64,000 bases of DNA, from positions 46,996,001-47,060,000 of the forward strand of contig OZ286471.1 of assembly GCA_965644265.1 (NCBI GenBank). The letters run 5' to 3'. Shown piece after piece: positions 451-60,862 of this stretch. The position numbers and the translations under genes were made by a program. The stretch comes from Glycera tridactyla (lineage: Eukaryota). The notes below the pieces were generated by a model, which worked only from the letters and a program-made list of their open reading frames with translations, did not search any database and was not told the origin of the DNA. How positions within the stretch are numbered: the first letter of the stretch is position 1; every line of letters begins with the position of its first letter.

Positions 451-693
451 ATCTTGTGTGCGTCTCATCTACAACAACAGAGGCACCAGCTTCGACGTTG
501 CCAGCCTTTCTCAATGTTCCAGCTGGTTGCTTCGTTAGAACAACTGGTGGTAATGCGAATGGCGATTATTGTCACTTTCCCTTCGTCTACAAATCGGAAC
601 GCTATGATACATGTATCAAGCTAAATCACGATCGGTATTGGTGCTCGGTTGCATCAATATATGCTGTGGGCCAACGATGGGGAAATTGCCTAG
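451..693 (+). CDS. Exon FN2-1 (type A; linker + FN2)
   Basis: ttttcattag|AT..CTAG|gtaacg, 243 nt, phase 1-1; DLVC..GCFVRTTGGNANGDYCHFPFVY..YWC..RWGNCLG. Confidence 0.95.

Positions 694-60862: not shown

Follow-up and report, generated by a model that had tools for sequence, protein, structure and literature searches.

The window considered here, a stretch of 64,000 nucleotides from Glycera tridactyla (assembly GCA_965644265.1, contig OZ286471.1, positions 46,996,001 to 47,060,000 of the forward strand), most probably represents the 3' portion of a single very large animal gene on the plus strand. With a probability of about 70%, this gene encodes a giant protein built of FN2 modules, mucin-like linkers and PAN modules, in which the symmetric exons are a record of tandem duplication and splicing by default takes all of them in sequence. 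A total of 44 exons has been modelled on the plus strand between positions 451 and 60862. They encode 26 FN2 modules with Thr/Ser/Pro linkers and then 17 PAN/Apple modules, which agrees with the 43 modules counted in a first-pass annotation of the same stretch, along with one additional FN2 relic. When the exons are concatenated by script, a procedure limited to counting stops, the joined frame stays open for about 4,026 codons with zero stops.

Modules, exon borders and extent of the array

The long open stretches of the plus strand fall into two classes, one with an FN2 signature up to about 28.2 kb and the other with a PAN/Apple signature from about 31 kb. Hidden Markov models (HMMs) derived from the window recover, on the plus strand and only there, 26 full FN2 modules, half of another, and 17 PAN modules. 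Against the curated Pfam cut-offs of 22.2 bits for FN2 (PF00040) and 21.4 bits for PAN_1 (PF00024), all five FN2 exons tested score 47.2-65.7 bits and all five PAN exons tested score 24.7-30.1 bits. The earlier view of the 1-1 symmetry as the mark of exon-shuffled extracellular modules is borne out by these scores. Among solved structures, an FN2 exon matches MMP-9 and MMP-2 (collagen-binding FN2 inserts) as well as fibronectin with E=4e-33 to 6e-21 and with the Cys/aromatic core aligned, and a PAN exon gives a weak match to the HGF N domain alone (E=0.23). The columns of the four Cys and of the aromatic core (FPF, Y, WC, Y-D, W-G-x-C) are at least 90% conserved across the 26 FN2 modules.

The FN2 repeats of fibronectin, MMP-2 and MMP-9 belong to the same Pfam family. 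About half of the core residues match the MMP-9 repeats, and the four Cys and the aromatic FPF/Y/WC/YD/WG positions are held in common with them. However, known FN2 proteins carry one to three repeats (two in fibronectin, three in the gelatinases), whereas the present gene has 26 in the window and at least 232 visible. Moreover, a mucin-like linker and two additional Cys stand before each of its FN2 modules, and no FN2 module adjoins a catalytic or FN1/FN3 domain. The linkers are 10-205 residues long and consist of Ser, Thr and Pro to 38-91%; exon 16 contains at 16256-16593 a classical mucin-type repeat inside the exon, in which a 36-nt unit (12 residues, S-T-S-I-T-P-P-x-S-L-P-like) recurs 9.4 times. 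The Thr/Ser/Pro-rich linkers are probably O-glycosylated, and we infer a secreted glycoprotein of the 'beads on a mucin string' kind as the product.

Six Cys are found in 40 of the 43 modules; exons 3 and 6 have five, exon 41 has eight and exon 43 has four. Judging from the even number of Cys, the modules could fold independently. The exons open with recurrent motifs, D-E-(I/V)-C in FN2 and G-C-x-D-S-F in PAN, and the codons split at the junctions are mostly Asp (FN2) or Gly (PAN). Owing to the six Cys and these junction codons, removal of one module should leave its neighbours intact. Such free-skipping modularity is a general property of proteins of this kind, which permits cassette splicing and is no demonstration of it. 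The linker-less exons 3 (3768-3938) and 6 (6879-7049) leave one Cys without a partner in every 3-exon unit, and this residue might serve in intermolecular cross-linking.

In the fibronectin gene, each FN2 module lies on one exon with phase-1 borders, and class 1-1 modules were reportedly described by Patthy. The features of this class, namely one module per exon, phase-1 introns on both sides and a length of 3n, are individually present in 42 of the 44 exons. The remaining two, 40120-40354 (235 nt, with a phase-2 donor) and 41036-41115 (80 nt), are symmetric only jointly, as a 1-1 unit of 315 nt, exactly as the first-pass annotation had it. All 44 exons have AG acceptors (30 CAG, 14 TAG), GT donors and a G at donor position -1, the acceptors being phase-1 AGs preceded by pyrimidine tracts. 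The FN2 modules all end in Cys-x-G|GT, so that the exon closes on the first base of a codon, and the PAN modules use a phase-1 G|GT donor soon after the last Cys. GTRAGT is matched by only two of the 44 donors and 31 of them begin with GTAA; departure from GTRAGT is the rule in this gene and not the exception. Four of the deviant donors listed earlier are indeed present (GTGCGT, twice; GTTGGT; GTACTC; GTATTT), but the fifth, GTCTGT, occurs at no modelled donor, the nearest to it being GTGTGT at 40355.

The window-derived HMMs were also run on 240 kb upstream and 30 kb downstream, so that 334 kb were covered in total. Over this length, 233 FN2 matches follow one another uninterrupted from window coordinate -239,517 to 28,220 and are succeeded by 21 PAN matches, all on the plus strand and with no interleaving of the two classes. 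The array spans window coordinates -239517 to 86001, contains at least 250 modules, and shows the Cys-x-G|GT donor at 228 of 232 FN2 ends. A genome-wide Pfam search extends the plus-strand FN2 matches on this contig back to position 46,508,600. We infer that the whole FN2/PAN array is one gene. About 6 kb beyond the window, a PAN exon at 70068-70307 ends in TAA straight after its last Cys-Thr, and an AATAAA signal follows 180 nt downstream, at 70488; the segment 70068-70488 is the probable last coding exon with its stop and polyadenylation-type signal. A near-copy of this stop-bearing exon with the same ending lies 15.7 kb further on (85765-86004, at about 85.8 kb), and may serve as an alternative last exon or be no more than a stray duplicate. 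Among the domains seen in the 334 kb there is no vWD, C8 or cystine-knot oligomerisation domain. Genome-wide, about 1,000 FN2 candidates are found, clustered on this contig (C32) and on contigs C42, C39 and C28. Literature on FN2 together with PAN, on FN2 in annelids and on FN2 expansion with mucin yielded no account of such a gene.

Array growth and exon symmetry

Duplication is visible in the array at several scales. At the start of the window, the exon sizes run three times through the series 243, 264-273 and 171 nt, which is a 3-exon periodicity. Positions 334-2900 have a 95% identical copy 3.8 kb upstream (-3462 to -960), introns included; this copy, comprising the first two exons of the 3-exon super-repeat, is a very recent duplication. 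The region from -103.5 kb to -30.8 kb contains dozens of units in tandem, about 1267 or 1308 nt long and each with one FN2 exon and its intron. One of the units of about 1267 nt has ten full-length matches, and these, with their introns, all reach an identity of at least 94.6%. The segment from -103500 to -30800 is an exon-level, satellite-like array. Within the window, mean identity falls to 48% for FN2 cores and 36% for PAN modules, and most of the modules there are old.

Exons 20-23 stand apart. Their FN2 cores are 84-91% identical, with a synonymous divergence (dS) of 0.15-0.45 and a ratio of non-synonymous to synonymous divergence (dN/dS) of 0.13-0.30. The linkers have dS above 1 and the introns are unalignable, giving 36-47% identity in forced alignments. 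Such a pattern suggests that gene conversion has acted on the cores alone, alongside purifying selection. In one of two RNA contig sets (X2), the allele of exon 20 differs by five clustered substitutions at 21262-21280; four of them agree with the relic and two with exon 21, and the patch looks like a short gene-conversion tract. The relic itself (22810-22907), the 3' half of an FN2 exon, keeps a good donor; unrelated sequence now stands in place of its 5' half, and it lacks an in-frame acceptor.

The array has probably grown by round upon round of unequal crossing-over, in which exons were duplicated in tandem together with their introns, on scales ranging from single exons to the 3-exon unit of about 3.8 kb and the unit of about 1.27 kb now present in dozens of copies. 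Only units whose two borders agree in phase can duplicate without breaking the frame, and each copy would inherit the ancestral phase-1/phase-1 borders. The symmetry would then be a historical by-product and a precondition of growth and not a device for generating isoforms; splicing would by default take all exons in sequence. The protein would tolerate an occasional in-frame skip, or a haplotype short of an exon; either would alter length and valency without creating a designed repertoire. The exons themselves are beyond chance, and the phase that they share is no independent coincidence, because as duplicates of two ancestral units they do not represent 43 independent events. Since part of the array consists of near-identical units, a role in length or valency is a better fit than a store of distinct binding modules.

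Giant repeat proteins encoded exon by exon and the variable number tandem repeats (VNTRs) of mucins resemble this gene in their beads-on-a-string layout, their spacers rich in Ser, Thr and Pro and their near-identical tandem units, as well as in signs of unequal crossing-over and gene conversion. Classical mucin VNTRs, however, lie inside one large exon, whereas here the repeat unit is an exon with its intron. If duplication with splicing in order is the correct account, the gene is a clear and very large case of phase-1 symmetric modules permitting growth by exon duplication to hundreds of domains. This account adds no new mechanism; it describes an ordinary mechanism in an extraordinary gene, which may interest workers on invertebrate mucus, adhesion or matrix.

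A relative that is 54% identical to exon 20 occurs on a metagenome scaffold in ENA (positions 1-1136). Its two complete modules, each a linker with FN2, share a single open stretch that no intron interrupts, with an AG acceptor at one end and a G|GTAAAT donor at the other; introns between modules can accordingly be lost with the 1-1 symmetry kept. As evidence of isoforms this match was set aside, for it is genomic and not cDNA, and it was the sole result of a word-based protein search with exon 20.

RNA contigs and the rival accounts of splicing

Two sets of RNA contigs from one study, both assembled at k=31, were available (X1, 18% of sampled words; X2, 5%), and were aligned over 18900-24899 only. 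The joints of the contigs follow the GT..AG rule, so the contigs derive from RNA; within the aligned stretch they cover exons only, save at three places. The exons concerned are all of the FN2 type: exon 17 (17544-17861, 318 nt), whose donor is confirmed by a contig; exon 18 (19006-19257, 252 nt); exon 19 (19908-20246, 339 nt), covered in X1; exon 20 (21018-21335, 318 nt); exon 21 (21823-22131, 309 nt); exons 22 (23423-23740, 318 nt) and 23 (24226-24540, 315 nt), each with both borders in RNA; and exon 24 (25179-25505, 327 nt). The contigs place exon borders at 17861|19006, 21335, 23423, 23740|24226 and 24540|25179.

A count of the junctions gives three that are consecutive. Exon 17 is joined to exon 18 (17861>19006), the loose end of the contig being window 17830-17859; exon 22 is joined to exon 23 (23740>24226); and exon 23 is joined to exon 24 (24540>25179), with the loose end corresponding to 25179 onward and the join seen directly in X2. 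The fourth, 20>22, is non-adjacent and has no diagnostic 31-mer. The first-pass annotation was right that any subset of modules stays in frame, but the hypervariable isoform system that it envisaged is left unsupported by a set in which three of four junctions are consecutive.

Several points weigh against splicing of all exons in order. One X2 contig joins 21335 to 23423, bypassing exon 21 and the relic. Exon 21 is uncovered in both runs, yet it is intact, and its core has a dN/dS of 0.13-0.21, a sign of purifying selection. The introns on either side of it do not align with those of neighbouring exons, which argues against a recent false duplication. Taken together, these observations fit genuine cassette skipping. 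In addition, the RNA covers only six of the 44 exons, at 2-7x contig depth and from one study, and because minor isoforms are lost in contigs, constitutive inclusion of the other exons is an assumption. The 5' end of the gene, its signal peptide and its promoter lie beyond the sequence examined, as the array continues for more than 240 kb upstream.

The 20>22 contig can be read in more than one way. The 20>21 and 21>22 junctions share an identical 35-mer, and of 90 31-mers across the 20>22 junction none is specific to it. With no diagnostic 31-mer and a depth of 2-3x, assembly at k=31 could have made this contig from constitutively spliced RNA. Exon 19 is likewise uncovered in X2, and exon 21 does not have weaker splice sites than the exons beside it. 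The join is a lead and not evidence. For this contig only, a genuine skip may be put at roughly 40%, an artefact of the assembly graph at 30-35% and a haplotype without exon 21 at about 20%, the rest falling to other causes. Two further readings were rejected. An end of the contig in exon 21 instead of exon 20 is disfavoured by 11 mismatches to exon 21 against five to the end of exon 20. That exon 21 arose in the assembly as a recent duplication, either false or haplotypic, is unlikely in view of the unalignable introns on its flanks.

The best surviving alternative is regulated combinatorial cassette splicing, in which tissue- or state-dependent subsets of modules would give many isoforms of an adhesive or matrix protein, differing in length and composition; we consider it unlikely. 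The symmetry of all exons and the even Cys count in 40 of the 43 modules would suit it, and so would the 20>22 join, an intact exon 21 under selection with zero coverage in both runs, and the divergence of the modules in the window, through which inclusion could alter binding. Against this, the 20>22 junction holds no 31-mer beyond those of 20>21 and 21>22, coverage holes occur elsewhere too (exon 19 in X2), the other junctions are consecutive, and exon 21 has splice sites as strong as those of its neighbours. Large parts of the array are, moreover, near-identical units, in which skipping could change only length. Tenascin-C, with its FN3 modules A-D, and Drosophila dumpy are cassette-exon systems in modular proteins. 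CD44, with cassette exons v1-v10, offers a further system for comparison (PMC2199896). Runs of symmetric exons for extracellular segments, any subset of which stays in frame, are common to all three and to the present gene, and these three systems are the nearest working analogy if the skip of exon 21 is real. Combinatorial inclusion has been experimentally documented in those genes, whereas here it comes down to one k-mer-ambiguous contig, and the present array is one to two orders of magnitude longer.

Somewhat less probable again is genomic variation, whereby the number or content of exons would differ between haplotypes, the gene behaving as an exon-level VNTR subject to gene conversion; the skip would then be only apparent and reflect an allele lacking exon 21. 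The array is certainly dynamic, with its 95% identical segmental copy, its dozens of near-identical units and its half-deleted relic. The patch of five changes in the X2 allele of exon 20 bears the mark of gene conversion, and the FN2 cores combine low dS (0.15-0.45) with saturated linkers and introns. The unit of exon 21 is old, however: its introns do not align with those of adjacent units, which makes a simple insertion of recent date in the reference improbable.

The most far-reaching proposal is that at least 250 symmetric exons are read combinatorially, by regulated skipping of FN2 and PAN exons of which exon 21 would be the first case, giving adhesive or recognition isoforms specific to a tissue, cell or individual with no Dscam-like docking/selector pairing. 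We regard this as distinctly improbable. Should the skip of exon 21 be true and widespread, it would amount to a new, docking-site-free form of large-scale isoform diversification outside arthropods.

In Dscam, the choice of exons is mutually exclusive and is guided by docking/selector pairings between introns. The hypervariable exon clusters of Dscam1 and their evolution in arthropods provide the background to this comparison (PMC3364881). The likeness lies in tandemly duplicated exons encoding variants of one extracellular domain, and clusters of similar exons do exist here, as in exons 20-23. Mutually exclusive splicing of this type, one exon per duplicated cluster being selected by competing RNA pairings, is nevertheless extremely improbable, since adjacent paralogous exons, indeed the most similar ones, are spliced together at 22>23 and 23>24, which rules out mutual exclusion there and contradicts one exon per cluster per transcript; since no common complementary intron element of 8 to 11 nt was detected; and since the introns of the youngest cluster are unalignable. 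Dscam is an analogy that fails its defining tests, and the available RNA gives no proof of the hypervariable isoforms that the first-pass annotation considered possible.

The same annotation saw no docking or selector sequence common to the introns, and on this it is upheld. Exact words in the 43 introns of this gene were compared with 20 shuffles after removal of the core splice signals. No 11-mer outside low-complexity sequence is shared by more than three introns, nor does the reverse complement of any such word recur in more than two others; both values equal the shuffle maxima. Words of 8 to 10 nt within 150 nt of acceptors or donors show no excess over the shuffled controls. Exact complementary motifs of 8 to 11 nt, as a docking and selector system would have, are no commoner than in shuffles, in either orientation, whether in whole introns or within 150 nt of the splice sites.

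Some further features of the contigs deserve mention. An X1 joint that goes back from 24540 to 20079 was considered as back-splicing or reordering and rejected, as only 33 letters fit; the segment 25338-25370 in exon 24, beyond the aligned stretch, is a paralog of the 20079 site with two mismatches, and a normal 23>24 join explains the length of the contig. Another X1 contig (20967-21208) runs colinearly from 51 nt inside intron 19 into exon 20 with no branch at the acceptor, and its intronic part carries an in-frame stop at 20978-20980; it could represent intron retention, unspliced RNA or an internal transcript start. Just upstream of the relic, an element of about 31-34 nt at 22495-22528 reaches a depth of 450-1000 in both sets, with flanking contig pieces spanning about 22419-22569; this element belongs to something highly expressed elsewhere. 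Faint RNA cover is also present in intron 23 near 24845.

Exon-by-exon layout of the window

All exons lie on the plus strand. The super-repeat at the start of the window opens with exon 1 (451-693, 243 nt, phase 1-1), an FN2 exon of type A. It is followed by the FN2 exon 2 (1067-1330, 264 nt, donor GTGCGT) and by exon 3 (171 nt, donor GTATTT), an FN2 core without linker. The second round comprises exon 4 (4257-4499, 243 nt), exon 5 (4962-5234, 273 nt, donor GTGCGT) and exon 6 (171 nt), the last again a core without linker. Exon 7 (7512-7754, 243 nt) and exon 8 (8232-8501, 270 nt, donor GTTGGT) come next, and then exon 9 (9216-9461, 246 nt), which has the donor GTTAGT and a W-A-N-C variant of the module.

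The FN2 series continues with exon 10 (10230-10538, 309 nt), exon 11 (10975-11304, 330 nt), in which the linker is 91% Ser, Thr and Pro, and exon 12 (11819-12052, 234 nt, donor GTACTC). Exon 13 (12693-12956, 264 nt), exon 14 (13851-14123, 273 nt) and exon 15 (14710-14976, 267 nt) lead to exon 16 (16218-17003, 786 nt), whose FN2 module is accompanied by a long mucin-like linker. Beyond exons 17 to 24, the class ends with exon 25 (26915-27217, 303 nt) and exon 26 (28021-28221, 201 nt), which is the last FN2 exon. A microsatellite, (CTT)21, stands at 11324-11387 and begins 20 nt beyond the exon 11 donor.

About one third of the linker-bearing FN2 exons contain an internal AG in phase 1, accompanied by a pyrimidine-rich run, at 523, 4332, 7587, 8328, 11137, 11879, 12780 and 20076, in each case 168-177 nt before the exon end and just upstream of the FN2 core. 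Use of such an AG would, from its position, drop the mucin linker alone and in frame, giving a 171-nt form as in exons 3 and 6. None of the RNA contigs shows an internal AG of these exons in use.

The PAN modules begin with PAN 1 on exon 27 (30965-31234, 270 nt), PAN 2 on exon 28 (32729-32992, 264 nt) and PAN 3 and PAN 4 on exons 29 (33953-34225) and 30 (35940-36212), both of 273 nt, followed by PAN 5 on exon 31 (37007-37288, 282 nt). PAN 6 is divided between exon 32 (6a) and exon 33 (6b). The phase-2 donor of 6a, GTGTGT, lies within a TG microsatellite run (40354/40355), and 6b encodes the last Cys with a Thr-rich tail and has a phase-1 donor, GTAAGT. Thereafter each module again occupies one exon: PAN 7 on exon 34 (42060-42317, 258 nt), PAN 8 on exon 35 (44650-44910, 261 nt), PAN 9 and PAN 10 on exons 36 (46039-46302) and 37 (46948-47211) of 264 nt each, PAN 11 on exon 38 (49589-49834, 246 nt), PAN 12 on exon 39 (51510-51767, 258 nt) and PAN 13 on exon 40 (52628-52867, 240 nt). 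Exon 41 (54202-54444, 243 nt) encodes PAN 14, the module with eight Cys, exon 42 (57795-58052, 258 nt) PAN 15, and exon 43 (58853-59119, 267 nt) the divergent PAN 16 with four Cys. PAN 17 on exon 44 (60605-60862, 258 nt) is the last in the window, and the gene runs on past its end.

Five runs of N interrupt the window, all within modelled introns and none touching a coding base: 10726-10911 after exon 10, 12358-12577 after exon 12, 30383-30520 and 30593-30819 after exon 26, and 32236-32704 after exon 27. The feature closest to any of them is the acceptor of exon 28 at 32729, 24 nt past the gap that ends at 32704. Phase 1 is found on both flanks of every gap and the frame is consistent; a symmetric exon hidden in a gap would keep the frame, so this agreement says nothing on continuity across the gaps. 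Downstream of exon 44, long TG/GTGT runs occupy 61902-61965 and 62136-62241.

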